Positions 1,188 through 61,234 of a stretch of DNA of 64,000 bases are shown here, in pieces; the first letter of the stretch is position 1; every line of letters starts with the position of its first letter. The notes below the pieces were generated by a model, which saw only the letters and a list, made by a program, of their open reading frames with translations, searched no databases and had not been told where the DNA came from. The DNA is from Octopus sinensis. Taxonomy: Eukaryota. The stretch is taken from assembly GCF_006345805.1 (NCBI RefSeq), contig NC_042997.1:153202001-153266000 (forward strand), written 5' to 3'. Made by a program: the position numbers and the translations under genes.

Positions 1188-1744
1188 TGAAGCTATCTTA
1201 GAGATTTCTATGGAAAATGGAATTAATGGAATCAGCAGGGTTGTGATTATTTTTGAGAGACTACTAGTGTATGCTGTATTTCCGTCTCTGCCCAACGTTA
1301 GGAGGTGTGGAGTTGGAATAAAACTGATGAATGTCATCGATTTAAAGATTATGCATCCTCAGAGAATGTTCTGGATAAATATAAATCATCTCTTGTGGAT
1401 CCTGGTGGCATTACCAATTCTTGGATATCGTTTATGACGCACTAAAACAACTCTGTAATAGTGACAATGCAATGAACACCAACACGAACTTGCACCTGGT
1501 GCTTTTTGATAAGGATAGGTAGAAAGAATAATGCGGGAGTGCAAAAAAGGAAAGGTAACACCCGAACTTCTGCAAGGTGCTAAGGACTTGATATAGGTGG
1601 ATTTGAAGAAAGTATATTGAAACCATATTGTAATAAATGATACTGCGACTCAACTTCATAGTATGGTCTGATTTCAAAGAAAAATATTCTCCTGCTTGTC
1701 ACACAGACAATGCCTTGGAACGGTAATAATTCTCTTTAATTTTG

Positions 1745-1915
1745 ACACAAGGCTAACATATCGACCCCAGTGCTCGGCTGGTATTTATTTTATTGAGCTC
1801 AAAAATATGAGAGGCAAAGTATACGCGGAGGTATTTGAAGTCAGAGCGTGAAAGGCGAAAGGGAAGGCTAAGCATTTTATCTTGCATAAATGACAGATTA
1901 CCGCCTTTTGGAAAG
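1745..1915 (-). mobile_element. Degraded tRNA-derived SINE family S2
   Basis: Contains ATCGACCCCAGTG...GGTATTTATTTTATTGA...AGGCAAAGT, matching the copies at 4270-4487 and 15854-16075. Confidence 0.6.
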
Positions 1916-2496
1916 CAATAAATGAGCGCATGAAAAGAAGGGTCCGAGATATGGGTTTCAGGAATAATATGTTCCACAGTGTTCGACTAGAGGAAGATGC
2001 CATGGGTTTGCACTAGAATCAATGTTTCTTACCTGGCTTGTTTTAAAATTTAGGAAAGTAATGACAGAGGGAAGCAGAAAATACTTCAGCATGAATATGT
2101 CACAGAGGTGTGAGAGGAAAAGCTGAGAACCAAGAACAAGTCTCTAGTGTAGTGAGTAGTAAAATAAAATAAAATAGCTGCTGCGAGGTTGAAGTGGATA
2201 TAACTATACACAGCTTGGTGTAGTTGTTGTATAGGTTACGAGTGCACAAGGGTCTTACTGTGGGGACCCAAATAAACTAAAAATTCCCTGGTAGTATCGA
2301 TGCTAATTGATACCGGTGGGAAAAAGACATTGCAGGAAAGTAACGGAATTCTCCTAATGCCCAGTTGATATATGATAAAAGTTGCAAATGTTTAAGCATT
2401 GACTGCCGAATCATCATTAGATATTCACATATTGTCGATATTATCTTCTTTTATCCATTCATCAAGTATGGATACTATATCATCTGTCATTATAAC

Positions 2497-3350
2497 CTTT
2501 ACTTTTCTTTTACTTGTGTCAGTCAGTGAACTGCAGCTACGCTGGGGCACTCTTGAAGGGTTAAGTCAAACAATTCGATTCCAGTGCATATCTCTTCAAA
2601 CCTGGTACTTGATCTGTCGGTATTTTGCCTGTCGAAACGGTAGTTTATAATGACAAGTAATGGCGAGGCAGCAAGCACCAACACAAAGACATACGTAAAC
2701 GCACACACACACGCAGAGCCGAATTAAGATCCATAGAAGTCCTAAGCACTTACAAGGTTTTGGTGCCCTCAAGTATCTGTAACTGGTTCAAAATGTAACC
2801 AAAATAATTTAAAATGTAAACAAAAATATACCATAAAATAAATTTATATTTTTCAAAATGAAACAAAACTAACAGTAAGATGGAAAATATTTATTTCTAT
2901 ATGCTTCCATTTTATTTATATTTGAAAGTTTTCTCCTTCGTTTTTTAATTTAATCGCAAAACCTTTGATGATATTGTTTTACGTAAAACGTCTGCTTCTA
3001 TACATAGTAGAGATAAGGCATTACGAATATCATTTTAACAAGTTTAAAGTAATTTTTTTCGTGCCATAAACCATTTTCATCTCTGTGTTTCCCCCATCCC
3101 TTGATGCCCTAAGCACGTGCTCATTTTGCTTAATGCATAATGCTTAATCCAGCACTGCACATATGTGTGTCTGTGTGTTTATGCGTGTGTGTGTGTGTGT
3201 GTGTGTACAACGGGCCTCCGTACAGTTTCCTTTTACCAAATTCATCTCCCAAAATTCAATCAGAAGTCATTGGTTAGCCTGCGGCTATAGTAGGAGACAC
3301 TTCCTTAAGATGTTGCACCGGGGAACGGAACCCAAAACCACGCGTTTCCC
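2497..3350 (-). mobile_element. SINE S1 copy interrupted by a MITE in its central CA repeat
   Basis: The tail at 2497-2560 and the head half at 3200-3350 (ACAACGGGC...GGCTATAGTAGGAGACACTT...GAACCC) are collinear with the uninterrupted copy at 35652-36010. Confidence 0.7.
2714..3157. mobile_element. hAT-like MITE (~444 bp)
   Basis: Imperfect 15-bp TIRs CAGAGCCGAATTAAG / CTTAATCCAGCACTG. The flanks CACACACG and CACATATG are a 6/8 match to an 8-bp TSD. Confidence 0.6.
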
Positions 3351-4020
3351 ACACAATTGTGTTTTTTTTATTTTTTTACATAAACTTGAAAGAAATGCTC
3401 ATCTCTAAAACGGCGAAAAGCAATCAATTTTTATATCAGGATGCATTAAAATATTCTCACCTTTATATCATACTTACATCTAGTTATATAGATCTTTCTT
3501 GTTCTGGATTATATAGTGTTTGTGTTATGATTATCCTGATATATTTGTATTTTTCATATTTCCTGATAACAAAGAATATTGTGGTAAACGACAGCTAACA
3601 CTGTCTGATTTTTGCGCTTACAAATGTGAAACACATAAATATAAACATTAAAATTTATTATATGTGCTTACGATAATTTAGATACAAATTAGTTTTACAT
3701 TTATAGAGATTATCAGATGACTGTTTATAATTTTCTCTTTTTTCCTTTTTCTATATATGTACATGGTGTGTGTGTACATACATCTATACGTGTGCATGTG
3801 TGTTTGCGTGTATACACACACACCTAGGTGGGAAGAGCAAAAGATATGAATGTCTAAAACAGCAATTTGATCATCTCTTTGTTATGTAAGACATTATTTA
3901 TACGCAAATTTTGCTAAATGTACATTTAAGACGAGATAAACGTGTGAACGTGTATACTGATGTATTATATAAAAGCAGCAAAATCACTCTCCGAGTCGTT
4001 TACTGCTTGTATTGTCATAA

Positions 4021-4023
<3 letters not shown>

Positions 4024-4073
<50 letters not shown>

Positions 4074-4153
4074 AGTGAAATCGGTCAAGTGAATAAACAC
4101 CTTTTAAAATTGCATTTTCAAACCTTCTTTCATATATATATATATATATATAT

Positions 4154-4248
<95 letters not shown>

Positions 4249-4250
4249 TA
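4024..4250. repeat. (TA)n and (TAGA)n microsatellites
   Basis: Read directly from the sequence. Confidence 0.95.
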
Positions 4251-4269
4251 TAAATTCAATAGGGTATTT

Positions 4270-4487
4270 AAATACCTATTTCTTTACTAACCACAAGGGG
4301 TTAAACACAGAGAGGACAAACAAAGACAAATAAACGGATTAAGTCGATTATATCGGCTCCAGTGCATAATTGGTACTTATTTAATCGACCCCGAAAGGAT
4401 GAAAGGCAAAGTCGACCTCGGCGGAATTTGAGCTCAAAATATTACGGCAGACGAAATACCGCTAGGCATTTCGCCCGGCGTGCTAAG
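4270..4487 (-). mobile_element. tRNA-derived SINE S2
   Basis: The reverse complement contains a B-box-like GAGCTCAAATTCC, then GCCGAGGTCGACTTTGCCTTTCATCCTTTCGGGGTCGAT and the same tail as 27277-27510. Confidence 0.85.
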
Positions 4488-5414
4488 TATAACAGGAACA
4501 GGTTTACTTTAAGTGGAATACAGAAGTAAGGGATGAGTATATTTCAGGATCAATTGATTTTGCTTTCTGGATAAAAAAAATCATATTTTAAGCGCATCAG
4601 CTGAAAATTAACACTTAAACATCTATTTCTGAAATATTCATTTCATTAAGCCATGTGCGTTCTTTACTTTTGAATTGGTGGTTTTGGAGCAATGGCTCTA
4701 TTTATAGCAAGTGGTATTTAGGTGGTATTTAAATACTCTATCGCTAGCCACCTTATAATTATCATCATTATTATTATTAATAACGGTAATAATACTTATT
4801 TAATTTAAATTTATACTGGCTCACGATAAGTTCGTTTTGAATGTCGCGGGGACATTCAAAATTCCTTAGTAAAACTTAAAGCTAAGGGAGGTAACACTTG
4901 TAATTCTCACGTTGCTTTACCTACAAGTAATCTTAACCCAAAGGCTTTCAAATCAGATCCCAATGCTGGATGTTCAAGAACAAAATAAAGGGCAAATTTT
5001 TAATCCTGGGATCATACTGATTCTAAAAAGCTATAATATGTCTATGTAGAGCAACTGTAGACTTAGATACAGGGGTCCCAGACGGACAGACATAATTTCG
5101 CTTTTATTAATGTGTGTATGCATGTGTGTGTGTGTGTTTGTGTGTGTGTATGTGAGTGTGTGTATGAAAGAGTCCAGAGCTCCCGTCTCGGTTACGAGCT
5201 TGGAGCCCTGATAACCCGTTACAGCACTTACCCAGCGTACCTATTTGCTTAGATCACCAGTGAACCAAGTCCTTATATAATGTATACTCGGCAATCGTTT
5301 TAATTTCAACACGCTGGTCTAAGATCAAATCACTTTCTTGGCAAGTAAACCTCTGTAATGTATGTGTGTATGTGTGTGTGTGTTTGCGTGTGTGTTTGTG
5401 TGTGTGTGTGTGTA

Positions 5415-9893: not shown

Positions 9894-11061
9894 ATTTATG
9901 TTTGAGCAGAAGTATAATCAGAGAAAAGTTAAGCTTTATAAACAGACACATGAACAGTTATAGAAGAAAAACTGGTAGAATAAACATGAATAAAAGACAC
10001 CATCACATATCGTATACAAGCCTTTGTTTTGCATTAGTATACATATTTCATAATACATATACTACATATATAAGATAACATAAATCCACTATGTTTTGGA
10101 CAAATTGCTTTAAAAGAAATGACAATTTCTAATTGGTCCGGAAGTATTGATTGTGTCCAAATTAATAAAAAAAAATAATAAAATAACGATGCAGAACTTT
10201 ATAAAGATGAACAAAACAATGAAGAAATATGCAACTAGAACCTAAAACTACAGATTTTGTTACATTTATGTTATTTGCTGAGAAAATTTTGTACTTTAAA
10301 ACATATTATTCTTTGCAATTAGTATAAAGGAATTACTTTTTTAATTAGTCATGTTTTCCAATATGCATTTCAGTTCTTGACAGGTGTTCAATGTTCTTGG
10401 GTTTTTTTCCTACTGGCAGTGAAAAAGACATGTTTCAAAAAATTTTAATTTACCTCTGTGACCAGTTTAATATCAGAAGAGAATCTTCGAACGGGCTCTC
10501 CGATAATTCGCTATTGAAAGTATCCAGTCGCTACCAGGAATTTTTATTTGCAAATCCCCAAATAATGTAGATACTATATCGATATAGTGACATCAATTTC
10601 TTCGAAAAATAGCCAAATAAGCATACTTATAGATAAATAGATAGATAGATATATAGATAGATAGATAGATAGACACATATATACACTCCCACTCACACAT
10701 ATATATATACATACGTACATACATACATATGCACACATGAACATGCACACATACATGTGGGCCTATGATGGGGGGTTGAGACAGTGTGTATATCTTCACG
10801 ACTACTTTCATAAAATCATGCTACATGCTTCCTGATCATACCAGCTCGCAATTTCGCAGTTGACGGCTATGGTTACATGTTTAGGCATGTTGTGTGTATA
10901 TATATATATATATTTCAATGCGTACAAATAACACGAAAAACTAAATAAATAGTTACCAGGGTTACAACACTTCACATAAGTACCAAGGATGTAACCGCCT
11001 ACTTATAATTGTAGAAAGTCCAGGGCTATGTAAAATGTTTTTGTGTAACGTAGAAAAATAA

Positions 11062-12006
11062 ATAAATGAAGTTAAACGCAGGTGTTATTCAAATCTTTAC
11101 TCTTCTGACATGTGCTTAGAAGAAAACATTGGTATTATTCCAGAAGGAATAAAATAATGTAAAACAATGCGATCTTCTCGTCAGGGAAAAAAAAAGAAAC
11201 CAGTCACATCAATAACATTTTAACATATGTGATAACTGCATGTTTGATGAAGGGAATGCTGGCAAATAATGTTTAAAAAAAAACATTAATAGATATAACA
11301 TCAAAGGAAATTTATAGAAAGAGAAGGAGGAGGAAAAAGAAATTAGCAGAAAACTTATAGTGGAGAAATATAAAGCGATTGGTGAATAGGATTGAAGCTT
11401 AAAGGCGCGGAAAAAGATATATTTAGCGGAAATGAAATGTAAAAAGAGAGTTAAGGGTCTAGTTCTATAGATTGGTAGACATTACTTATAGGAACTAAAA
11501 GTATGTTATTCCCAATGCTTGCAACGATAAACGCGTTTTTAAACCTGTTTACAAGAGGATTCTCTGAGAACAGGATGAAATACAGTTCATCGTTAACGAG
11601 CGAACAAAAACGTTTATCTTTATCATCGGGAATGTAAATAGATGGAATATTCGATTCTGAATCAAATTGCTTACTATGTTCCTTAAGAGACCAAATTATT
11701 TTACTAAGTCCAGTATTGTTGCGTTTATTGATATGTCTAAATGTAGAAAAAATTGTCTTTGACGTTATGTCTATTAAAGGTTTTTATTTTTAAATTACTT
11801 GCCAGCGTTCCCCTCATCGTATATGAAGTCATTATATTCTGTTAAAATGTCTTATTGATATGTTTGGTTTCTTTTTTTTCCTGATGAGAAGATCGCATTA
11901 TTTTACATCATTTTATTCCTTCTGGAATAATACCAATGTTTTTTTCTTCGAAACATATGTCGGAAGTATAAAGATTTAAATAACACCTGCGTTTAACTCC
12001 ATTTAT
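11062..12006. mobile_element. Foldback / long-TIR non-coding element (~945 bp, ~255-bp arms)
   Basis: 11062-11315 is the reverse complement of ~11750-12006, e.g. ATAAATGAAGTTAAACGCAGGTGTTATT vs AATAACACCTGCGTTTAACTCCATTTAT. Confidence 0.75.
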
Positions 12007-43084: not shown

Positions 43085-43830
<746 letters not shown>

Positions 43831-44787
43831 CAGAACCCTGAAAATATTGCGCATCTGCAACATGAGCTGGACACAATATACAGGTGGGCTGAGGACAACA
43901 ACATGCAGTTTAATGCAGGTAAGTTCCAGGCCCTGCGCTACTGGCACACAAAGGTAAATGACGTGAAGACTGGATACACTGGCCCAGGAAGAATTGCAAT
44001 CCCTGAGTCAAAATCAGTGCGTGACCTGGGCATTGACATGAGCAATGATGCATCTTTCCAAATGCATATTGCTAATCTGGTGATAAAATGCAGACGGCTA
44101 GCTGGATGGATTCTCCGAACTTTCAGAACAAGAGAGAAGGAGACACTGATGGTCCTATGGAAAACATTTGTCCTCAGCCGCTTGGACTACTGCTCCCAAC
44201 TTTGGTCACCACACAATATAAAACAAACAGCAGAACTCGAAGCAACTCAGAGAAGCTACACAAAGAAAATCGTCTCAATGCAAAATGTCAGCTACTGGGA
44301 AAGACTGAAGGTATTAACCTCTTCTCCCTGGAGCGGAGGCGGGAGAGATATGCAGTAATATACATCTGGAAAATCCTGGAGGGTCTTATCCCAAACTTTG
44401 GCATTCAAAGTTACTCCAACCGCAGAACGGGGCGCCGCTGCGTGGTGCCAAGGATTCCAACATCACCATCAAAATACAGGTCCAGATACTGCAACAGCTT
44501 GGGTTTCAGAGGACCACAGCTTTTCAACATCCTCCTAAATGCCTGAGAGACTTACATGGTGTGGATGTGGGTTTCTTTAAAACTAAACTGGATCTCTTCT
44601 TGTTGGAAGTCCCAGATGAACCTACCTCACGACAGGAGACGCGGATGCGGGCAGCAGCATCGAACTCCCTTGTTGATCAAGTGCCACGTATCAGAGGTGG
44701 ATTCACAAACTAGTGTGGCTCATTCAGCGGTGGTGCCCCAGCATGGCCGCGGCCTTCGGGCTAAAACATTTTTAAGGATTTAAGGAT
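43831..44787 (+). mobile_element. 5'-truncated CR1/L2-group LINE, family B copy 1, (TTAAGGAT)n tail
   Basis: Encodes the RT end and thumb: [56 protein letters not shown] arrays flank both sides. Confidence 0.9.
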
Positions 44788-44960
44788 GTATATATATGTA
44801 TGTATGTATATATATATATATGTATATATATATATGTATATATGTATATATATGTATATATGTATATATATATATTATATATATATATGTATATATATAT
44901 ATGTATATATATATGTGTATATGTATATATATATATGTATTATATATATATGTGTATATG

Positions 44961-44992
<32 letters not shown>

Positions 44993-45178
44993 TGTGTGTA
45001 TATGTATATGTATATATATATGTGTATAGTATATATATATGTATTATATATATATGTGTATATGTATATATATATATTATATATATATATATGTATGTAG
45101 TATATATATATGTATATATATATATATATATGTGTGTATATGTATATATATATATATATATGTATATGTATATATATA
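44788..45178. repeat. TA-rich array
   Basis: Read directly from the sequence. Confidence 0.95.
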
Positions 45179-45268
45179 CTTTGATACTTTGATATTTTGA
45201 TAGGTTTCGGCCATTATTGGCCCAGGCCATGTCTAACTTAATAGCACCACCTGGTGAAGTCTTTCAAG

Positions 45269-48215
45269 TCAGAATTTGGGCACTATGGCCCACTCAAGTA
45301 GAGAGTTATTGTTTACAGAGACATATCCGGGTGTAGGGGGTTTATCCGGGATTTCTTGAAGGAATCTGTCCAAAGACTTCTTGAACCCTATAGGGTCAGT
45401 TTCTGTTTTAATGTGTTTTGGTGTAATGTTAAAGAGAGCGGGGCCAATTGAGGTGAAATAATTGTGCCGTATTGTTGTTATGAGATGAGAGTGCGATTTT
45501 TGTTTTGGGCGGATGGCACGGGGCCCAAGCCTTGGATGTACCTTCAAGGTGATGCCAACATCATTTGGGCAATGCTGATGGAATATTTTCCACATCATGC
45601 AGATGATGTAGCGCTCACGACGACGTTGGAGAGAATAGAGTTTTAGCTTTTCTAGTCGACCCCAATAGTCGAGGCCTGTCATGCCATCTATCCTTTTTGT
45701 GATTGCCCTTTGAGGTGCTTCAACTTTTATGATACCTTGTATTGTGTGGGGAGACCACAGTGGACAACAGTATTCAAGGTGGGGTCGGGCAAAAGTGGAG
45801 AAGAGAAGGATAATGGTGTGGATATCTCTCGACTGGAAAGTTCTGAGAATCCAGGAACACATTCTGCGAGCCATGTCAACTTTGGTGTTTATATGAGTGG
45901 CCCAGCTTATGTTGTTGTCCACAATTACTCCCAAATCTCTGATGTTGTTGGACGCCGCGAGAGTTTCACCTGAAGGAAGGGAGTATGGGAGTTTCAGGGC
46001 ATCCTCTTTTCCAAAGTGGATTAGCTCAAATTTATCCTCGTTCAGCAGCATATTGTTTTTTTCTGCCCATTGGATAACAGCCAGTAGATCTGACTGAAGG
46101 CATGTCCGGTCACTCGCCTCATTTATGACCTTCTGTAGCTTGGAGTCATCTGCAAAGATTTTTATGTTGCTGTGCTTGATGATGTCATTAATGTCATTAA
46201 TGTAAATGATGAAAAGAAGTGGGCCCAGCACAGTACCTTGCGGAACGCCACTACTGACTTTGGATGGGCTTGATTTTACCCCTTCAACTACAACATGTTG
46301 AGATCTGTCTGTCAGGAAACACTTGATCCATTTCAGTAACTTTCCAGAGACACCAATGTTGGATAGTTTTTTCAATAGGATCTTGTGATCGACCCTGTCG
46401 AAGGCCTTACTGAAATCAAGGTAGATGACATCGGTGTTGGAGCACTCTCCCAAAGCTCTCAAAAATGTCCTCAAAGTGATGCAGGAGCTGCGTTAGGCAG
46501 TCCCTTCCATTACGGAAACCATGTTGGTTGGAGATCAGCCGTCTGTTGCTTTCCAGAAATTGGGTTATTCGAGATCTCACCACCCTCTCAAATACCTTGA
46601 TGATATGAGAGGTGAGTGAGATCGGACGGTAATTCACTGCAAGGGACTTGTTTCCCTTTTTGAAAACTGGGACAACAGACTGGGACAGAAGGTTTTTTGG
46701 AATATAGCCAGCATCCAGTGAGTTTCTCCACAGATTAGCAAGGGAGATGCAAGTTGGTGTCGACACACCTTCAGGACACAAGCAGGGAACCTATCGGGGC
46801 CTACTGCTGAATTGTGTTTTATTTCGTTTATCGCCGCTAAGACATCAGGGGCACTAAACGTTATGTCCGATATAGTGTGTTGGGGGTTGACATCACTGAT
46901 ACAGCCCAGATCGGCCATATCAGGATTGCTGAAAACAGAGCAGTATTGTTTCTGCAGTATCTCGGCCATGGATTTGGCATTATCTTGGAGAGTGCCAGTT
47001 TCGTCAATTAGAGGGCCTACAGTGGAGACAGTGACCCTGCGTTTCCTCGCAAATGAAAAGAACATTTTGGGGTTGAGTTTGATTTTTCAATGGCCCACTT
47101 CTCCTCAGCTGATCTTTGGTTATTGATGAGGGTCTTCATGCATTGTTGGAGGTTATATTTTTTGATTCAAGCAGTGCGATAGCCGTCGAATGTGTGTGTT
47201 GCTGTTGGCAGTACTTTAGTTTGTTAATTTTTTTGTTTGTTCTTTTTATTTTTCTGATAATGTTTTTCTGTTTTGGGGGATTCTGCACTTTTTGTTCACA
47301 GGTCTTGGTGGGGAGTGTTTTGCACATATGTCTGTGACGGTGTCTACAAAGATCTGCCAATGTTTTATGGTTGGTGGAGATGTGTGTATGTGTAAAGGAC
47401 CAGTCAACATGTGATAGCTCGTTCCTGATTGCATCCCAGTTGGCATTATGGAGATCCATGTTGTCAAATGGGTGGGCTGGAGGAAGGTCACTAGGATTAG
47501 CTTTCGGCTGGTGGAATTTCATGTTACAGGGAACCATGTCATGGTCTGAAAGAAGGGTTTTTTCCTGTAACGTTATGTATAGTGTTAGTGTGGTTACTAA
47601 ACACTAGGTCCAAAATGTTCTGATGTCTTGTTGGTGCAAGGACAAGTTGGGACAAGAAAAACTCATTCGTAAAGTCGAAAAGTGACTCTGCTGCTTCTTT
47701 GTCAGCGGTTGAGGCGGGAGTGCTTGGTTTCAAACAGTTTGTAGTCCAGTCAACACAGGGTAGATTGAAGTCTCCCATCATGAGTATGTTGCTAGAATGG
47801 CACTGTTGAATAAAGCACTTAATGCTGTTGAGGCATTCTTTAAAGCACAGTATAGGTGTTTGGGGGCGGCCTATAGAGCCCAATTACTGTCAGGTCATTG
47901 GCTTTGTTGTGCACGGTGACTGATTCACAGTAGCCGTTGGAGAATATACTATTTCCATCTGCCGTAAATGAATCATGCAGGAAAATGGCAGTTCCACCCT
48001 TCCTCCTGCCGATACGATCCGCGCGGATGGTTGTGAAATTCTTCACTCTCACTTCGGCTTCCAAGTGGGAGTTGTCAAGGTGGGTCTCAGTGAGAATGAA
48101 GAAAGGGATGTGGTGTGAATGGTTACCAACCCAGTCTCCAATGAATTGGACCTTCCATTTTTGTGCATTGATGGAAGGGCTGACACCTTGTGCATTGAGT
48201 AGGAATGTGGAGGTT
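45269..48215 (-). CDS. LINE ORF2: APE endonuclease plus reverse transcriptase, split by several frameshifts
   Basis: APE motifs LNAQG, LTETH, GLYRPP, MGDFNLP, PTRHQNILDLVF and SDH. RT motifs [33 protein letters not shown] and FADD, plus the thumb YSLQRRRERY. The last 401 aa are uninterrupted. Confidence 0.9.
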
Positions 48216-48349
48216 AGTGTAGTGGCTGGTTTTGACTGTTGCAGGGGGCTTGGATTTTTTGTGTGTGTTAGTGGCAGCAATGTGGGGAATTGGTGCACTG
48301 GGGTAATAGCATAGGATGGTGTTGAGTGATGGCTAGAATGTTTTTGTGT

Positions 48350-49496
48350 ATCTCTTTTGCCATGTTCAACATGGCTAAAAAAGAATTTTCCTGCTTAGGG
48401 AGCAGTTTTTGGCTGGAGGTGTGGTTGCACTGTTGGATAGGGTTGTAGTTTCCCCTTTTGTTGTTGTTGTTTTTGTGTCTTCCTGAAAAGACTGGACCAG
48501 CATTACTGCAGCATGGTGTGTTTCTATTTTTATTTTAATTCAGGTTTGTGTGTTGGCTTGAAGCCCCGTTTCTGTTTGTGCGTCGGGTTCCTGGAAGATG
48601 AGTGAAGGGACAGTCACTCAGTAGACATGTTCTCTCACGTTGGGAATACCGGCAGATTTTGGGACTCCGAGTTGTGTGTGTTTTGAATTTCGATTTACTA
48701 TTTGGTGGTGTTGATGTTATTGTGGGATGCGTGCTTTGGCCTTGGCCGGTAGTGCGTCTAGTGCCGTGTAGATGCGTGAAGATGCAGTCACTATTTGTGC
48801 AGAGTCTCTGGCGCAGTGAATAGCGGCATATTTGGGGATTTCTTGTTTGTGCCGTGGGGGCGCATTCTGCTTCCTATGTTTCTTTAAGTTTTTGTTACTG
48901 CAGTAGTATTGAGGTGGTGATGTGGGGGAAGAGGGCAGTGGTTTCTTATTTGGTTTTCTGTCGGTATTTTTGGTGATAGAAGACGATGGTGGCAGCGGTG
49001 GTGATGATGTTGATGATAATTGTGGTGGTTGCTGTGAGAGCGGTGAAAAGATACTGGCATTTAGTGAATCATCTAGTAAGCTAGAGTTGAGGAGTGGCTG
49101 TTATTGTTCTTGTTGCTGTGGCTGTTGTTGTTGCTGTTGTGCTTGACCGATGTTAGGGTCAGCCATTGTGCTGGGAACCAGGAGTGGCTCATTCTGTTGT
49201 TGTTGTTGTTGTGGCTGCTGATTTTCTAGCTGTTGTTGTTCTTGAACTGTGAAAATATGAAGGAACTTTTCATAATGGCCTTTTGTCAGTTTGAAAGATA
49301 CTTCGATATGTTTCAGTTTGCCACGAATCTGTTTGACGGATCGTGTGTTGACCACTTGTGATATTTTTTCGGCAATCTCATTCAAACACAAAACATTTAG
49401 ATTTTCTGTTTGGGAAAGAGAGAACCATGTGTTTATTAAAACGTCAATTTCGTTATCAGACCAATTTCGTCTGTTGCAGGCCTGCAAGTTAGTCAT
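48350..49496 (-). CDS. LINE ORF1: Myb/SANT-like N-terminus, poly-Q, Ser/Pro-rich linker and CCCH zinc finger (one nonsense codon plus frameshifts; 3' end approximate)
   Basis: N-terminus NWSDNEIDVLINTW..EIAEKISQVVNTRSVKQIRGKLKHIEVSFK. The TAA at 49101-49103 sits in a CAA tract and the frame continues open. CRYSLRQRLCTNSDCIFTH (C-x8-C-x4-C-x3-H) lies at ~48770-48830. Confidence 0.65.
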
Positions 49497-49788
49497 GTTT
49501 GTTTTTTCTTTTGTTTGTTTCCTTTTGATTTTTGAAAATATATATATTCTTTCTTGGGATTAAAGAAGTATATATATATAAATGTTCTCTCTTAAGGGTG
49601 TGAGTTTTTGATTATTTGGTTGTTTGAGGATATTAAAAGAAAACAGGTGTATATAACAATTTGTAGTTAAATGAAAACGTACTTACGGGTTTGTAGGCAA
49701 ACACGTGGTTTATATATGTATATATATGTATATTAGATATGTATGTATGTAGATATAATATATATATGTATATATATATGTATATTAT

Positions 49789-49825
<37 letters not shown>

Positions 49826-51824
49826 GAAAAAACAAGTAAAAATAGAAAATGCTAAAATAATTTTATAGTGAACATTTCAGTACCGGTTTCGGTCATTTTG
49901 AGACCTTTTCAACTGTAACGATTAAATAATTAAATTTAGAAAAATTAGAAGAAAGTTTTTTTAAAAATATATTTCTATAGTAGTGTTCAGATTTAAGTGG
50001 CATTCTGCCTTTCTCTGACTCCCTTGTTTGCACTTGTGTGTTCGAGGTAGTTGTGAGCTCTGGTAGGGTAGTAGAGAGAAGGCTGGTGAGGAAAGGGGGT
50101 GGGAGAATCTGGGAGAGTGCCCTGATGGTCGTATTTTGAATGGTCAGTGGCGGCTGGCAGTCTCAGTTCAATTCAGGAGAATATTTATATTGACAGGCTT
50201 CTTTATGAATTAGCGTAGGTGTTATACTAAAAAACATTAGTGACAAACTTAGGGGTAGGGGTGGAGAAGAAGAAGAAGAAGAAGAAGAAGGAGAAGGAGA
50301 AGGAGAAGATGACGATGATGGTGATGGTGGTGATGATTATGACGACGATGATGATGATAACGATGATGATGAAGAAGAAGAAGAAGAAGAAGGGAGAAGG
50401 AGAAGATGGTGGTGATGATGGTGCGATGATGATGATGCCGATGATGATGATAACGATATGATGAAGAAGAAAAGAAGAAGAAGAAGAAGAAAAAACAGAG
50501 AAGGGAGAATATGAATGTAAATATAGCTATGAAGGGGCTGATTAGTAATGGATCCTATTGAGTGTAGTATTTGTGTGTGTATATATATTTTTTTTTCTTT
50601 TATCTAAAGTTGAGGTATATTAATTGTTTGTCGTAGACCCGTTAAGAAGTGGCTTGTATTTTGTAATAAAGGATTTTCTTTACTTATTCGTTGTCTCGAG
50701 TTGTATCGTCCCTAAATTGGTAAGGGGGAAAATTCTGAAGTTTGGTGTTTTTTTGTTGCGCAAGTATCTATGTGTTGGCTAAAAGCTATTTTTCTGTTTT
50801 GGGAATTTTTATCTGGGATCTGTGCAGGGCCATTCGTTTACGCAAGCCATTTTTTGTTTGGCCTATGTACTGCTCTTGACAACCCGGAGCAGGTTAGTGA
50901 GTATATTAGGTTCTCCGAAGCAAATGTGAAGTTGCTTTTCACTGTAAAACGTTGTCCCTGTTTGAAGGAGAACTCAGAACCCTCGATTAGATAGTCGCAT
51001 ATCCCGCAATTGGTCTTCCACATTTTTTTACTGTCGGCTTCTGTGTTGAAGAGTGAATTCGGGCTTGTGTAAGGAGACTTTTCATGGATCTAGGCTGTCT
51101 TTTGCTTTTTATGATCGTGTGTGTTTGGAGGATTGTGTTCATTCTGTGGTCTTTTTTAGGAGGGGTATGTTGTGGAGGATGGTGTCGAAGGCTTCGTTAT
51201 TGAGAGGGTTGTTGTGGAGATGTATGGTAAGGCTTTTGGTTGTAAGTTTTTCTTTGATTTGGGATGTCTCAGTTCCTTGATGTTAAGTTGAAGGGCACGT
51301 TGAATGCATTTGTCAATAAGTGAAGGTGGATAGTTCCTGGTGGGATTAGGGTATCTTTTAGTTCTTGTAGTCGTGTGTCTCTTGTGTTTGGCGTTAGAGA
51401 CTATAGTGCATATCCTTTTTGCTAGATTGAAGGGATATTCATCCTGGTGTGTCTGGGGTGGCATGAATTGAATGGAAGATATTGCTTAGAGTCTGTAGGC
51501 TTATAGTATATGTCTGTTTCTATTATATTATTAGCTTTCTTAATGAGGATATCGAGGAAGGGGAGTTGTTGTTGGCTATATTCCATCGTGAATTGGATGT
51601 TTACGTCCAGTCCGTTTAAAATTTTCTGGAATTCTATGAGTTTTTCTATATTTTTATGCCAAAGGATGAAACAGTCATCTAGATATCTCTTCCAGTTGTT
51701 TTCTATGTAGATGGAGAAAGGGCTGCCATATCTTTCTAGAACCTTACGATACAGACTGATCTCTAGGTATCCTATGACTAGGTTGGCAAAGGAGGGGGCC
51801 ATTCGTGTACCCATCGCAGTCCCC
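49826..51824 (-). mobile_element. Neptune-like Penelope element, inverted arm
   Basis: Reverse complement of 52229-54244. Encodes GTAMGTRMAPSFANL..WKRYLDDCF..LPFLD through the GIY-YIG and 3' end. Confidence 0.9.
49876..49918 (-). ncRNA. Minimal type I hammerhead ribozyme, U3-A8 variant
   Basis: TTACAG-TTGAAAA-GGTC-TCAAAAT-GACC-GAAA-CCGG-TA-CTG. Helix II is GGTC/GACC, helix III is the palindrome ACCGGT and the cleavage triplet is GUA. Confidence 0.7.
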
Positions 51825-54244
51825 ATAGCTACAGACAAAATAATTAAAGTCCCTAATCCTAATGACCTCAAATTGAGACCCATAATAGCAGGTCCCGCAT
51901 GCGAAACCCACCGCCTCAGTAACTTTTTAGACACCCTGTTAAAACCACTCCTCAAACATGTCAAAAGCTATATAAGGGACGACTTAGATATGCTCAATCA
52001 CCTACCGAATACTATAAACAAAAACACCATACTGGTATCCTTCGATGTAGTCAACCTCTACTCCAATATCCCCCACAACCTAGGACTAGAGGCAATCCAA
52101 TTCTGGCTAGAGAATCACGCCAACGAACTACCACAATCGGATCAAAAAAGAATTTGTGATAGAAGGGTTAAATTCATCCTGGAAAATAACTTCTTCGCCT
52201 TCAATGACAACTTCTACCGACAAAAATCGGGGACTGCGATGGGTACACGAATGGCCCCCCTCCTTTGCCAACCTAGTCATAGGATAACTAGAGATCAGTC
52301 TGTATCGTAAGGTTCTAGAAAGATATGGCAGCCCTTTCTCCATCTACATAGAAAACAACTGGAAGAGATATCTAGATGACTGTTTCATCCTTTGGCATAA
52401 AAAATAGAAAACTCATAGAATTCCAGAAAATTTTAAACGGACTGGACGTAAACATCCAATTCACGATGGAATATAGCCAACAACAACTCCCCTTCCTCGA
52501 TATCCTCATTAAGAAAGCTAATAATATAATAGAAACAGACATATACTAAAGCCTACAGACTCTAAGCAATATCTTCCATTCAATTCATGCCACCCCAGAC
52601 ACACCAGGATGAATATCCCCTTCAATCTAGCAAAAAGGATATGCACTATAGTCTCTAACGCAAACACCAGAGACACACGACTACAAGAACTAAAAGATAC
52701 CCTAATCACCAGGAACTATCCACCTTCACTTATTGACAAATGCATTCAACGTGCCCTTCAACTTAACATCAAGGAACTGAGACATCCCAAATCAAAGAAA
52801 AACTTACAACCAAAAGCCTTACCATACATCTCCACACACAACCCTCTCAATAACGAGCCTTCGACACCATCCTCCACAACATACCCCTCCTAAAAAAAGA
52901 CCACAGAATGAACACAATCCTCCAAACACACACACTATCATAAAAAGCAAAAGACAGCCTAGATCCATGAAAAGTCTCCTTACACAAGCCCGAATTCACT
53001 CTTCAACACAGAAGCCGACAGTAAAAAAATGTGGAAGACCAATTGCGGGATATGCGACTATCTAATCGAGGGTTCTGAGTTCTCCTTCAAACAGGGACAA
53101 CGTTTTACAGTGAAAAGCAACTTCACATTTGCTTCGGAGAACCTAATATACTCACTAACCTGCTCCGGGTGTCAAGAGCAGTACATAGGCCAAACAAAAA
53201 TGGCTTGCGTAAACGAATGGCCCTGCACAGATCCCAGATAAAAATTCCCCAAAACAGAAAAATAGCTTTTAGCCAACACATAGATACTTGCGCCAACAAA
53301 AAAACACAAACTTCAGAATTTTCCCCCTCTACCAATTTAGGGACGATACAACCTCGAGACAACGAATAAGTAAAGAAAATCCTCTTATTACAAAATACAA
53401 GCCACTTCTTAACGGGTCTACGACAAACAATTAAATATACCTCAACTTTAGAATAAAAGAAAAAATATATTACACACACAAATACTACACTCAATAGAAT
53501 CCATTACTAATCAGCCCCTTCATAGCTATATTTACATTCATATTCTCCCTTCTCTGTTTTTCTTCTTCTTCTTCTTCCTCTTCTTCTTCATCATCATCGT
53601 TATCATCATCATCGCATCATCATCATCGCCACCATCATCACCACCATCTTCTCCTTCTCCTCCTTCTTCTTCTTCTTCTTCTTCATCATCATCGTTATCA
53701 TCATCATCGTCGTCATAATCATCACCACCATCACCATCATCGTCATCTTCTCCTTCTCTTCTTCTTCTTCTTCTTCTTTTCTCTTCTTCTTCTTCTCCAC
53801 CCCCTACCCTTAAGTTTTGTCACTAATGTTTTTTAGTATACCACCTACGCTAATTCTATAAAGAAGCCTGTCAATATAAATATTCTCCTGAATTGAACTG
53901 AGACTGCCAGCCGCCACGACCATTCAAAATACGACCATCAGGGCACTCCCAGATTCTCCCACCCCCCTTTCCTCACACCTTCTCTCTCTACTACTACCCT
54001 ACCAAGAGCTCACAACTACCCTCGAACACACAAGTGCAAACAAGGGAGTCAGAGAAAGGCAGAATGCCACTTAAATCTGAACACTACTATAAATATTCTT
54101 TTAAAAAAAACTTTTCTTCTAATTTTTCTAAATTTAATTATTTATCGTTACAGTTGAAAAGGTCTCAAAATGACCGAAACCGTACTGAAATGTTCACTAT
54201 AAATTATTTTAGCATTTTTTATTTTTTTACTTGTTTTTTTTTTC
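51825..54244 (+). mobile_element. 5'-truncated Neptune-like Penelope element (RT plus GIY-YIG)
   Basis: RT motifs KLRPIIAGP, SFDVVNLYSNIPH, GTAMG and YLDD, then the thumb. A C-x4-C-x2-C linker (CGRP[N]CGIC, with a 1-bp frameshift) precedes NLIYSLTCSGCQEQYIGQT (GIY-YIG). The 3'UTR has CTT/CAT repeats. Confidence 0.9.
54148..54190 (+). ncRNA. Hammerhead, second arm copy (one G missing in helix III)
   Basis: TTACAGTTGAAAAGGTCTCAAAATGACCGAAACCGTACTG. Confidence 0.65.
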
Positions 54245-54284
54245 ATATATTCAACTCGTGTGTTCCTTTTCACCCTTATACATA

Positions 54285-54395
54285 TTATACTATAATATAT
54301 ATATATATATAATATATATATATTATATATTTATGTATATATATATATATATATGTATGTATATATATATTATATATGTATATATATAATAATAT

Positions 54396-54427
<32 letters not shown>

Positions 54428-54585
54428 GTATGTATTATGTGTATATATGTATATATATATATATGTATGTATGTATGTGTATATATGATATATATATATA
54501 TATATGTATGTATGTGTATATATGTATGTATATATATATATATTATGTGTATATATGTATGTATGTATATATATAGGTATGTATA

Positions 54586-54617
<32 letters not shown>

Positions 54618-55104
54618 ATATATGTATGTATGTACTATATATATATATATATGTATGTATATATATAGTAACGATATGTATGTAAATATATATATGTATG
54701 CATGTATATATATATTATGTATGTATATATATATAATATGTATGCATATATATATATGTATGTATATGTAATATGTATGTATATATGTATGTATATTGTA
54801 TTATATGTATGTATTAATGTATATATATATGTATGTATGTATATATATATGTATGTATATATATATATATGTGTATATATATATACATATATATATATAT
54901 GTATATATATATATACACATACATATATATATATGTATATATATATACACATACATATATATATACATACATATATATATATATATGTATGTATATATGT
55001 ATAAATATATATATGTATGATGTATATATATATATGTATGTATGTATATATATATGTATGTATATATATATATATGTATATATATATATGTATGTATATA
55101 ATAT
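54285..55104. repeat. TA/TATG array
   Basis: Read directly from the sequence. Confidence 0.95.
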
Positions 55105-55365
55105 AAATCCTTAAAAAAAATGTTTTAGCCCGAAGGCCGCGGCCATGCTGGGCACCACCGCTGAATGAGCCAACTAGTTTGTGAATCCACCTCTGATACG
55201 TGGCACTTGATCAACAAGGGAGTTCGATGCTGCTGCTGCCGCATCCGCGTCTCCTGTCGTGAGGTAGGTTCATCTGGGACTTCCAACAAGAAGAGATCCA
55301 GTTTAGTTTTAAAGAAACCCACATCCACACCATGTAAGTCTCTCAGGCATTTAGGGAGGATGTTG
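55105..55365 (-). mobile_element. LINE family B copy 2, 3'-terminal ~260 bp
   Basis: Matches 44525-44780 and is truncated at CAACATCC. Confidence 0.9.
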
Positions 55366-55458
55366 TATATGTATGTATATATATATAATATATATGTATG
55401 TATATATATATATATATGTATGTATATATATATATGTATGTATATATGTATATATATG

Positions 55459-55507
<49 letters not shown>

Positions 55508-55767
55508 GTATATATATGTATGTATATATATATATGTATATATATGTATGTATATATGTATATATATGTATATGTATGTATATGTATGTATATATATGTA
55601 TATGTATGTATATGTATGTATATATATATATATGTATGTATGTATATGTATGTATATATATATATATATGTATGTATGTATATGTATGTATATATATATA
55701 TGTGTATGTATGTATATGTATGTATATATATATGTATGTATGTATATGTATGTATATATATATATAT
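55366..55767. repeat. TA/TATG array
   Basis: Read directly from the sequence. Confidence 0.95.
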
Positions 55768-57101
55768 AAATCCTTAAATCCTTAAAAATGTTTTAGCCCG
55801 AAGGCCGCGGCCATGCTGGGGCACCACCGCTGAATGAGCCACACTAGTTTGTGAATCCACCTCTGATACGTGGCACTTGATCAACAAGGGAGTTCGATGC
55901 TGCTGCCCGCATCCGCGTCTCCTGTCGTGAGGTAGGTTCATCTGGGACTTCCAACAAGAAGAGATCCAGTTTAGTTTTAAAGAAACCCACATCCACACCA
56001 TGTAAGTCTCTCAGGCATTTAGGGAGGATGTTGAAAAGCTGTGGTCCTCTGAAACCCAAGCTGTTGCAGTATCTGGACCTGTATTTTGATGGTGATGTTG
56101 GGAATCCTTGGCACCACGCAGCGGCGCCCCGTTCTGCGGTTGGAGTAACTTTGAATGCCAAAGTTTGGGATAAGACCCTCCAGGATTTTCGATGTATATT
56201 ACTGCATATCTCTCCCGCCTCCGCTCCAGGGAGAAGAGGTTTAATACCTTCAGTCTTTCCCAGTAGCTGACATTTTGCATTGAGAACGATTTTCTTTGTG
56301 TAGCTTCTCTGAGTTGCTTCGAGTTCTGCTGTTTGTTTTATATTGTGTGGTGACCAAAGTTGGGAGCAGTAGTCCAAGCGGCTGAGGACAAATGTTTTCC
56401 ATAGGACCATCAGTGTCTCCTTCTCTCTTGTTCTGAAAGTTCGGAGAATCCATCCAGCTAGCCGTCTGCATTTTATCACCAGATTAGCAATATGCATTTG
56501 GAAAGATGCATCATTGCTCATGTCAATGCCCAGGTCACGCACTGATTTTGACTCAGGGATTGCAATTCTTCCTGGGCCAGTGTATCCAGTCTTCACGTCA
56601 TTTACCTTTGTGTGCCAGTAGCGCAGGGCCTGGAACTTACCTGCATTAAACTGCATGTTGTTGTCCTCAGCCCCCCTGTATATTGTGTCCAGCTCATGTT
56701 GCAGATGCGCAATATTTTCAGGGTTCTGTATTGCGTGGGAGACCTTTGTGTCATCTGCATAGCTAGCAAGGGTGGTCATCGTAGCAACTGAAGGCATGTC
56801 TGAAAGGGCCACTATGAACATCAGTGGCCCCAAGACAGTGCCCTGTGGGACACCGCTTGTTATTTGCGTTTCCCTGGAGGTGGCTCCATTGCTCACAACT
56901 GCCTTTTTCTGTCTTTTAGGAAGTTGTGCAGCCACTCTCCAAGTTTCCCGCCTATGCCGGACCACGCAGTTTATGACAGATCATACCATGGTCGACTTTA
57001 TCAAAGGCTTTTGCAAAGTCAAGATATATTACATCCCACTTTGAGCCATTTAGTAGCTGTTTCAACACCCAGTCATAGTGCTGCAGGAGCTGTGTTAGGC
57101 A
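55768..57101 (-). mobile_element. LINE family B copy 3, ~1.33 kb, 5'-truncated in the RT
   Basis: Encodes [35 protein letters not shown] and YADD. Near-identical to 43831-44787 over the shared part. Confidence 0.9.
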
Positions 57102-59147: not shown

Positions 59148-61234
59148 ACGAAATTTTCAAATCGCCTAAACAAACAGATTGAAAGCAGTGAAAAGTCCCG
59201 CCTAAAATAAAACTGTTGGAAATCGAAAAATGTCTGCAACTCTCCATGAAAAAGAAAGAGCAGACAAAGAAGCCTGGGCTATAGAAAACATAAAATCTAA
59301 CCCCAGAGCTTTCTACAGGTATGCCAAAGAAACAGCTACAGTGCACTGTAGAATAGGGCCACTCCTCGAAAATGATGGCACACTTACAGGAAAACCAATG
59401 AGGGTAAGTGAAATACTGAATGAGCAATTCAAGAGTGTTTTCACTCCACCCCTTGGGCATCTCCAAATCACCAATCCAACTGACTTTTTTACCACTGCAG
59501 ATATAAAATCAGAGGCGGCGACGATAGATTACATCGATATAAAGGAAGACGATGTAACCAAGGCTATAGATGAAATGAAAACAGACTCAGCTACTGGCCC
59601 CGATGGATTCCCGGTAATCCTCCTAAAAGCATGTAAGAGAGTCCTAGCAAGACCACTGCAGTTCCTCTTTCAGAGCTTCCTTGCAGCTGGCAAACTTCCA
59701 GGAAAACTGAAGGAAGGTAAAATATGCCCCATTCATAAAGGAGGTAGCAGAGCGGAAGCCAAGAACTATAGACCTATCTCTCTGACCTCACACATCAGCA
59801 AGGTCATGGAACGAATAGTCAGAAGGAAGCTGATCACCTTCCTTGAAGAGAATGACTTGCTGCCCGACACCCAACATGGTTTCCGACCAGGGAGAAGCTG
59901 TTTAACTCAGCTCCTACAACACTATGACTGGGTGCTGAAAACGGCTGCTCAACCACTCAAATGTGGAAGTGATATATCTCGACTTTGCAAAGGCCTTTGA
60001 TAAAGTCGATCATGGAATGAATGTCACAAACTGCGTGATCTCAACATAGTTGGAAACTGGGAGAATGGCTTCATGACTTTCTGAAGGATAGAAGTCAGGT
60101 GGTAGTAGCCAATGGGGCCACCCCCCTTAACACACAAATAGTGAGCGGTTTTCCGCAGGGCACTGTTCTGGGACCACTACTGTTCATAATGCCCTCTCAG
60201 ACATGCCCTCAGCCACGCAGAGAGCCACGATCACAAGTTATGCAGATGATACAAAAGTTTCACAGGCAATACAGAACCCTGAGGACACTAAACACCTGCA
60301 ATGTGAGCTGGACGAAATATACAAGTGGGCTGAAAAGAATAGCATGCAGTTCAATGCTGGAAAGTTTCAAGCTTTATACTATCAGCATGCAAAACTGAAT
60401 GCAATACCCAATGAATACACTGGACCCGGAGGATGCAATCCCAGAGGCACAATCAGTGCGTGACCTGGGTATTCACATGAGTGATGACGCGACCTTTCAT
60501 GTACATGTTGCTAAACTGACAATGAAATGTAGACGGCTGGCTGGATGGATTCTTAGAACCTTTAGAACAAGAGAACAAGAAACCATGATGGTCCTCTGGA
60601 AGACACTTGTCCTAAGCCACTTTGACTATTGCTCTCAGCTATGGTCACCATCCAGTGTCAAGTTGATCACAGAACTTGAGGCGATCCAACGAAGCTACAC
60701 AAAGAAGATAGCCTCTATGCAAAATGTAAGCTACTGGGAAAGACTCAAGAGATTAAAATTATATTCCTGGAGCGTAGGCGGGAAAGATATGCCATAATAT
60801 ACATCTGGAAGATCCTGGAGGGAAGTGTCCTGAACTTTGGCATCGAGAGTTACGCAAATGCCAGAACTGGCGCGCCACTGCGTGGTGCCTAGGACTCCAA
60901 CCTGCCATCAAGATGTAGGACAAGATTCTGTGATAGCCTGGGCTTCCGAGGCCCACAGCTCTTCAATATCCTCCCGAAGAACCTGAGAGACCTGCATGGG
61001 GTGGATACAGATGTCTTTAAAATGAAGCTGGATCTCTTCCTGTCAGGTGTTCCAGATGAACCAACTTCACGCAGGAGGGGCAGATGAGGGCAGCTGCATC
61101 GACTCTCTCATGCACCAAATAGCAGTTGCTAGAAAGCCTCCATGAAGTGAAACCAAGTAGCAACACCAATGGCGGTGCCCCAGCATGGCCACAGCTCATA
61201 AGCTGAAACTAGAATCAATCAATCAATCAATCAA
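59148..61234 (+). mobile_element. LINE family C, 5'-truncated ~2.1 kb, (AATC)n tail
   Basis: A 256-aa ORF ([31 protein letters not shown]) is followed by frameshifted RT and thumb sequence. The tail is at 61213-61234. Confidence 0.9.

Follow-up and report, generated by a model that had tools for sequence, protein, structure and literature searches.

A CR1/L2-kind LINE of Octopus sinensis with a predicted Myb/SANT-like domain and CCCH zinc fingers in its ORF1

The region studied here is a stretch of 64,000 nucleotides from the genome of Octopus sinensis (NC_042997.1, positions 153,202,001 to 153,266,000), which is referred to below as the window and in whose numbering all positions are given unless a contig is named. 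Its minus strand carries, between 49710 and 45179, an inactivated copy of a long interspersed nuclear element (LINE) of the apurinic/apyrimidinic endonuclease (APE) type and of the CR1/L2 kind. Translation of this copy and comparison with related elements showed that the first open reading frame (ORF1) of the family is a predicted nucleic-acid-binding protein composed of four parts, namely a Myb/SANT-like domain, a low-complexity linker, CCCH zinc fingers and a C-terminal helix. The ORF1 proteins are the least understood part of LINEs, and CCCH fingers are typically RNA-binding.

ORF1 in the window copy and in related elements

The conceptual ORF1 of the window copy extends from 49496 to 48268 on the minus strand (about 409 codons). 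It encodes, in this order, a domain resembling Myb_DNA-bind_4, a poly-Q segment, a linker rich in S and P, a pair of C-x8-C-x4-C-x3-H fingers and the conserved C-terminal helix, and its lesions are two stops and a single frameshift. Beginning with the ATG (49496), the frame is open for 131 codons (MTNLQACNRRNWSDNEIDVLINTWFSLSQTENLNVLCLNEIAEKISQVVNTRSVKQIRGKLKHIEVSFKLTKGHYEKFLHIF), the translation of 49496 to 49104 reading MTNLQACNRRNWSDNEIDVLINTWF...NEIAEKISQVVNTRSVKQIRGKLKHIEVSF... and passing into two CAA/CAG glutamine runs. The core of the Myb/SANT-like domain (residues 9-74) was located at 49472-49275 and the Q-rich stretch at 49247-49104. This N-terminal pattern and the CAA/CAG poly-Q had been pointed out in an original prediction made from the sequence of the region, and every string quoted there is present on the minus strand. 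The same prediction regarded a TAA at 49103-49101 as the single stop of ORF1. The codon is in frame, and the frame shared with the N-terminal segment stays open beyond it through an S/P-rich stretch (49100-48855), but it is not the only lesion, there being also the frameshift and a second in-frame stop at 48537-48535.

Since the CCCH fingers lie in another frame than the S/P-rich stretch, a frameshift at about 48873-48855, where the open stretches of both frames overlap, must be crossed in order to reach them. The single finger that had been predicted to follow the S/P-rich frame, CRYSLRQRLCTNSDCIFTH, was indeed found at 48828-48754, though in this different frame; together with the adjoining LHGTRR it reads ICRYSLRQRLCTNSDCIFTHLHGTRR. 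It has a near-identical companion at 48654-48580, CRYSQRERTCLLSDCPFTH, which continues with LPGTRR (ICRYSQRERTCLLSDCPFTHLPGTRR), so that each finger is followed by GTRR. The C-terminal region (48534-48268) includes the helix SFLAMLNMAKEIHKNILAI at 48384-48328 and ends in ...CCH before the stop at 48270-48268; ORF1 therefore reaches about 80 nt further than the left boundary first assigned to it at 48350.

The closest named relative of the element comes from the octopod Argonauta hians. In this locus (L001) a single intact ORF1 of 407 aa is situated directly upstream of, and overlaps, an ORF2 encoding APE and reverse transcriptase (RT). In this protein a Myb-like N-terminus is joined by a linker rich in T, N and P to two CCCH fingers and the C-terminal helix; its identity to the window ORF1 is 33% in the Myb-like part and 45% in the CCCH region. 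The segment 49100-49500, which might have been a separate insertion, has its counterpart inside this single frame. In the Logan contig L006 (SRR29346471) the ORF of the Myb part (P0126), one CCCH finger and a C-terminal helix ending in ...CCH* are followed by an ORF2 of 1093 aa, the finger sharing 78% DNA identity with finger 2 of the window (blastn). In a further Logan contig, L010, the Myb part is followed, within the limits of the contig, by Q-rich sequence, by two CCCH fingers that are degenerate and by the C-terminal helix. The linkage of the Myb part to a LINE, which the original prediction had left to be confirmed in other copies, was thus found intact in L001 and, with the modules in a degenerate state, in L006 and in the available part of L010.

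Q-runs occupy the same position of ORF1 in P0126, in L010 and in P0123, the protein called on contig L007, and in Argonauta a T/N/P-rich stretch is found there instead. The C-termini of L006 (SFLDMLNLVKEIQRSILSI...CCH*), L001 (SPFLDLLKITQKLHTSL) and L010 are homologous to that of the window. In the family-wide layout there are thus one or two fingers of the type C-x8-C-x4-C-x3-H, behind each of which stands G-T-[RK]-R, the linker being Q- and S/P-rich in the window copy. As the modules follow one another in the same order in L001, L006 and L010, the Myb-like segment is considered an integral portion of ORF1, and it is very probable that the Myb-CCCH architecture is a true trait of the family.

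A six-frame search of the whole window with the expression C-x7-8-C-x4-5-C-x3-H gave two sites, both of them the ORF1 fingers. The spacing C-x8-C-x4-C-x3-H and all four ligands are kept in seven motif-matching fingers from five elements (two in the window, two in L001 and one each in L006, L008 and L009), two further fingers of L010 being degenerate. Moreover, P-x-[IL] stands before the homologous fingers and G-T-[RK]-R after them. The Pfam scores speak against the assignment, since they remain below the cut-offs both in the window (zf-CCCH_2, 20.1 vs 25.8 bits, E 9.4e-4) and in L008 (zf-CCCH_4, 15.9 bits; zf-CCCH, 14.6 bits). Short fingers often miss the Pfam gathering cut-offs, and for the putative CCCH fingers the evidence of the motif is judged stronger than that of the scores.

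Two relatives, L008 and L009, have an RT 49-53% identical to that of the window and an ORF1 in which no Myb-like domain is present. The ORF1 of L008 starts with a PHD-like Cys/His cluster having weak Pfam support, and a similar cluster, recognized by eye and without a Pfam match, is found in L009. In both the cluster is followed by a charged linker, three CCCH fingers, the last of the type C-x8-C-x4-C-x3-H, and a C-terminal helix. The PHD scores lie below the Pfam cut-offs, which weighs against this assignment. The CCCH-plus-helix core being shared, and the N-terminus being either PHD-like or Myb-like, the N-terminal slot of ORF1 is apparently exchangeable between the two predicted modules. 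The more distant ORF2 relatives L002-L005 showed no Myb or CCCH upstream and are uninformative on ORF1.

Two of the contigs are of unusual composition. L006 contains at 1282-4563 an intact APE and RT ORF2 of 1093 aa, which shares no more than about 25-27% identity with the ORF2 of the window and of Argonauta; its ORF1 is clearly homologous to that of the window, the homology stopping just past the ORF1 stop. This contig represents either an exchange of ORF1 between distant LINE lineages or a chimera of short reads. L007 (Logan SRR11869391) has at about 400-1270 a fragment of a Myb-like ORF1 and behind it, in place of the CCCH region, a frame resembling a piggyBac transposase, owing either to a nested insertion or to a chimera. 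In the protein called on this contig, P0123, TGA had evidently been taken as a W codon.

Assignment of the Myb/SANT-like domain

The Myb/SANT-like character of the N-terminal domain is well supported by sequence comparison. The window domain matched the Pfam profile PF13837 (Myb_DNA-bind_4) with E 9.8e-6 and 26.3 bits, the curated gathering cut-off being 27 bits; the family member P0126 passes this cut-off with 31.7 bits, and P0123 scores 15.5 bits. Of the profiles that had been suggested for this region, PF13837 was thus matched, but MADF (PF10545), Myb_DNA-bind_5 (PF13873) and zf-CCCH (PF00642) gave no match at E<=1 for the window pieces.

An exhaustive phmmer search over 1.84 billion representative proteins with residues 1-87 as the query returned just 7 matches, comprising four fish proteins (E 1.8e-8 to 1e-4), all of which align to the query in 4-5 stretches, and three short Logan ORFs resembling LINE ORF1, P0126 among them. 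The sole fish protein that was scanned against Pfam (P0121) reached 308 bits on Myb_DNA-bind_4, with six repeats. The alignment by hhalign of a profile built from five LINE domains with nine fish Myb_DNA-bind_4 repeats gave a probability of 95.4% (E 1.9e-8, 63 columns), with W-S-D-x-E...W of helix 1, helix 2 and the basic R-S-x-x-Q-I-x-x-K-L-K of helix 3 in register. Both phmmer and hhalign therefore indicate homology of the window domain to bona fide Myb_DNA-bind_4 members. In line with this assignment, the helices of the AlphaFold2 models, which are of low confidence, can be read as three plus an additional one.

Other searches were less productive. The five-sequence Myb profile retrieved only the three known Logan proteins, and the search for proteins homologous to the conceptual full ORF1, with the Q-runs masked, gave no match. 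The alignment of the Myb domains was too variable to yield search patterns; scans of JGI metagenomes with the conserved 3' untranslated region (UTR) motif and with CCCH peptide patterns found no match.

ORF2, termini and insertion site

The limits of the element, 45179 and 49710, were deduced from the TA-rich arrays which TRF places at 44789-45178 and 49711-49825. No second copy of this LINE exists within the window, which made a consensus within the window impossible. ORF2 (48433-45269, minus strand), in which APE precedes RT, has lost its start codon and contains at least seven frameshifts. It matches RVT_1 with E 9.6e-21, and the match of APE is weak (E 0.045 on a fragment). By tblastn and tblastx it is 47-62% identical to the Argonauta ORF2 over eight frame segments. 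The Argonauta frame is open for at least 1045 codons and contains clear APE and RT domains (Exo_endo_phos, 1.5e-10; Exo_endo_phos_2, 8.9e-15; RVT_1, 9.3e-33), so that the original prediction of a LINE with APE and RT was correct. The RT fragment of the window retrieves relatives at 45-63% identity, including an Argonauta hians protein, and the nearest RT matches are unnamed or 'hypothetical protein' entries.

In both species the last part of ORF1 is shared with ORF2, which is read there in another frame, at 48268-48433 in the window and at 7080-7416 in L001. The intact Argonauta copy has no ATG in this overlap upstream of the APE domain, which suggests an unconventional translation of its ORF2 by frameshifting, reinitiation or a non-AUG start; an ATG is present there in L006.

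The 3' end is of the predicted CR1/L2 type, with stem-loops and (TATCAAAG)3 and without poly(A). Window (45268-45203) and L001 (10236-10282) show strong conservation of the 3' UTR, for which two hairpins are predicted. None of the 15 predicted pairs is compensatory, the comparison being of two sequences, and in hairpin 2 (GGCC-N6-GGCC) all six loop bases differ (AATAAT vs CGGCGC) while the stem is kept. It is followed in the window by the tail TATCAAAA-TATCAAAG-TATCAAAG (45202-45179) and in Argonauta by (TATCTAAG)3, the tails of the relatives consisting of two or three units of 8-11 nt. A scan of 43-57 kb against Rfam gave no family.

The 5' UTR of the window copy (49710-49497) contains the 8-mer GTAAGTAC at 49686-49679. 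This motif occurs once per element and in the 5' UTR only, being found also in L001 (5336) and L006 (240), in the splice-donor-like context A-rich-C-[CT]-GTAAGTAC; the three 5' UTRs are otherwise unalignable. The motif might act as a promoter or initiator element, or be used as a genuine splice donor.

The insertion of the element in a TA array, as originally proposed, was confirmed by the arrays at its two ends and by a paralogous arm devoid of the LINE. The array at the 5' end (49711-49825; TRF period 2, 59.5 copies) runs into sequence 94% identical to the other arm of a palindrome, and the array at the 3' end (44789-45178) is at the same time the tail array of another LINE, the paralogous arm at 56731-55378 being 92.6% identical. 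The palindrome is an inverted duplication (43828-51824 and 52229-56731) with arms 92.6-94.5% identical. Arm A consists of the blocks 43828-45178 and 49712-51824, and arm B of the blocks 56731-55378 and 54370-52229. The LINE is situated between the blocks of arm A and is absent from arm B, a paralogous empty site in which the blocks are joined by a TA array of about 1 kb and the duplicated tail of another LINE. The LINE-free arm B indicates that the element was inserted into a pre-existing TA array after the duplication.

A comparable situation was found in Argonauta, where the same complex TA/TAAA unit, TATATAAATAAA-like, is present on both sides of the element (4740-5185 and 10311-11410) and the array must accordingly be older than the insertion. 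In L010 and L007, (TA)n and (TATG/TATA)n occur directly 5' of the element. Altogether, arrays are present on both flanks in the two full-length loci (2/2) and on the 5' flank in four of the five loci.

The surroundings of the element contain further repeats. The centre of the palindrome, at about 50.0-54.0 kb, contains a retroelement in two copies of opposite orientation, which has RT-like ORFs and a motif resembling GIY-YIG (NLIYSLTCSGC..QYIGQT). This retroelement is probably Penelope-like; its Pfam match to RVT_1 is weak (E 0.0011). One pair of mirror-image (AGA)n and (GAT)n arrays, with K/E/M-rich pseudo-ORFs, lies at 50240-50461 and 53609-53800, one in each arm. A different LINE family is represented by three copies, at 43828-44788 (+), 55770-56965 (-) and 59254-61230 (+), with an RVT_1 match of E 1.2e-9 at 55847-56965. 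The 3' end of each copy runs directly into a TA/TATG-rich array in the manner of a tail, and the copy at 43828-44788 is arranged tail-to-tail with the element studied here.

Proposed role, alternatives and known systems

As an explanation of the whole, we favour, with moderate confidence, the family architecture described above combined with a tethering role of ORF1. The CCCH fingers would bind and package the RNA, as CCHC knuckles or RRMs do in other ORF1 proteins; multimerisation may be the task of the low-complexity linker together with the C-terminal helix, and the N-terminal slot may hold a chromatin- or DNA-tethering module that carries the ribonucleoprotein (RNP) to its target. A bias for TA arrays would then most likely arise from the joint action of the tether and of the 3' tail (...GTATCAAAGTA), which would anneal to TA-rich DNA at a nick. 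A preference of the family for TA-type arrays is fairly probable. It is possible, but doubtful, that the Myb-like domain is the determinant of this targeting, and the stricter proposal that the Myb/SANT-like domain of the ORF1 protein, by binding to microsatellite DNA rich in TA, guides the LINE RNP to it is to be considered unlikely.

Several observations weigh against a targeting role and, in part, against the preference as such. L006 has no TA array on its 5' flank. TA-dense sequence accounts for 10% of the window and for a far larger share of the Argonauta locus, and other LINEs of the window, such as the three copies of the unrelated family, also end in TA arrays. Against this background, two to four insertions into arrays are only suggestive. 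In addition, the relatives' tail units of 8-11 nt are followed by short microsatellites, which have grown out of the final bases of the unit (GTAT, AAGT, AGGT), and L008, which has the PHD-type ORF1 and no Myb, likewise ends in a long (GTAT)n array. The L2-type UnaL2 initiates its reverse transcription within the terminal repeat, where the template slips (PMC1636434), and slippage of this type makes the association with arrays explicable without a DNA-binding domain. Finally, the same slot is PHD-like in the sister elements, and the PHD type is known to read histones and not DNA sequence (PMC4120745). All this could be accommodated if the architecture were real but the target were chosen by the catalytic machinery, the APE nicking AT-rich DNA and the (TATCAAAG)n-TA tail annealing and slipping in the course of target-primed reverse transcription; the Myb-like domain might then act in chromatin or nuclear retention, in histone binding in the manner of SANT, or in controlling the promoter of the element itself. 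Tail slippage cannot account for the TA arrays that four of five loci possess 5' of the element, and the complex unit common to both Argonauta flanks shows that the array predates the insertion. However, neither point separates a choice driven by the APE and the tail from one driven by the Myb-like domain, and we regard a purely catalytic choice as a possible, though minority, account.

The nature and the origin of the N-terminal domain have been weighed in the same way. If the domain were instead a helical module for oligomerisation, with a role like that of the L1 ORF1p coiled coil, the borderline Pfam and hhalign matches would be false positives. The window domain is 0.7 bit short of the Pfam gathering score, and no Pfam Myb match was obtained for Argonauta ORF1 or P0124 (two of the five family members). 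The AlphaFold2 models of the window domain and of P0126, calculated from a four-sequence alignment, are of low confidence (pLDDT 66 and 62) and show long helices (14-28, 35-49, 54-67 and a fourth at 72-86); Foldseek comparison of both with the PDB gave nothing better than E 0.77 and no Myb match, and the top PDB sequence-profile matches were GCN4-type coiled coils over the KQIENKLKHI helix (E 0.23-0.96). The GCN4 matches are, however, non-significant, and three independent lines of sequence evidence, the Pfam score of P0126, the exhaustive phmmer search and hhalign, place W-x-D-x-E...W and the helices in register, so that such a module appears improbable. It was also considered that the Myb-like ORF might belong to a separate gene or transposon fragment merely lying upstream of a 5'-truncated LINE, as the stop and the frameshift between the Myb and CCCH parts of the window copy, and the piggyBac-like sequence replacing CCCH after the Myb ORF of L007, could imply. 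This reading was rejected, its likelihood being negligible, because the Myb-like part is contained in the single intact Argonauta ORF and the same order and spacing recur in L006 and L010; the window ORF1 matches the Argonauta one in length, and in both loci the TA arrays bracket the entire unit, including the Myb part.

The favoured reading, an ORF1 with a tethering N-terminus on a CCCH core, can be compared with what is known of related elements. In the survey of ORF1 proteins from CR1, L2 and Jockey, the types described are RRM, CCHC, transposase-22, PHD and esterase, and their evolution is found to be modular and reticulate; neither Myb nor CCCH is named there among the ORF1 domains, and the survey predates the cephalopod genomes and includes no cephalopod elements (PMC4120745). 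The replacement of PHD by Myb on a shared CCCH core fits this mode of evolution. The architecture had been put forward as undescribed, and no published description of a LINE ORF1 with Myb or CCCH was found in the searchable full-text literature, Repbase and Dfam being outside the search.

The most similar systems are the CR1/L2 LINEs with an ORF1 of the PHD type (Type III; Kapitonov & Jurka 2003; Metcalfe & Casane 2014, PMC4120745). They share with the present family the two ORFs with APE and RT, an ORF1 that begins with a small chromatin-directed domain, the exchange of ORF1 modules between lineages, and a 3' stem-loop with a short tandem-repeat tail and without poly(A). They differ in that Myb/SANT-like here replaces PHD and that CCCH is found where RRM, CCHC or nothing is reported (PMC4120745). 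The stringent-type L2 elements UnaL2 and ZfL2 also possess a conserved 3' stem-loop and about three short terminal repeats; their repeat unit is of 5 nt as against 8 nt (TATCWAAG) here, and UnaL2 and ZfL2-2 have a single ORF (PMC1636434). The nearest ORF2 relatives of the window element, L008 and L009, carry the PHD-like cluster, with weak Pfam support in the former and none in the latter.

Elements of the PIF/Harbinger group encode, in a separate ORF, a DNA-binding protein of the Myb/SANT-like (trihelix) type, which cooperates with the DDE transposase. The present family resembles them in having a Myb/SANT-like protein beside the catalytic one, but they are DNA transposons with no CCCH and no RNA intermediate. 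LINEs targeting microsatellites, namely Waldo, Mino, Kibi, Koshi and Dong, from the R1 clade, the Tx1/L1 group and the R4 clade, were reportedly described by Kojima and Fujiwara. Their specificity is ascribed to the endonuclease and to pairing of the 3' end with the target, and no ORF1 DNA-binding domain is known to be implicated in it. They too are APE-type LINEs found inside microsatellites; they differ from the present family in belonging to other clades, and the specificity here is based on two to four loci.

A Myb helix-turn-helix binds the target DNA in R2, which has an N-terminal zinc finger and Myb and is inserted at rDNA, and in TRAS1/SART1, which are inserted at telomeric repeats. 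These Myb domains are of the c-Myb type and belong to the RT-containing protein; R2 has a restriction-like endonuclease, and TRAS and SART are members of the R1 clade. Common to these elements and the present one is a Myb-type module on a LINE protein, which is here, in contrast, located in ORF1 and of the Myb_DNA-bind_4/trihelix type. No homology of the studied domain to the Myb domains of R2 or TRAS1/SART1 was detected. The Myb of R2 is mentioned in PMC5678591 and PMC6895275.

The presence of a DNA-binding-type domain and CCCH fingers in one predicted ORF1 protein, with a PHD-like cluster in sister elements, constitutes a natural swap experiment on the function of the N-terminus. The finding extends the known types of ORF1 and may be of interest for the transposable-element field, without establishing a new category. 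If the domain aids in the choice of target, it would explain regional preferences of APE LINEs having a relaxed endonuclease and would tie LINE activity to the TA-microsatellite-rich genome represented by the window. If the Myb-like domain directs the RNP, it would be the first ORF1-borne and exchangeable (PHD to Myb and vice versa) module of target selection in an APE-type LINE, and the insertion preference of a LINE would be re-programmable by a swap of the N-terminal domain of ORF1. Should the domain have no role in targeting, the family would still add to the ORF1 modules known so far, and its study could make use of the intact copy from Argonauta.

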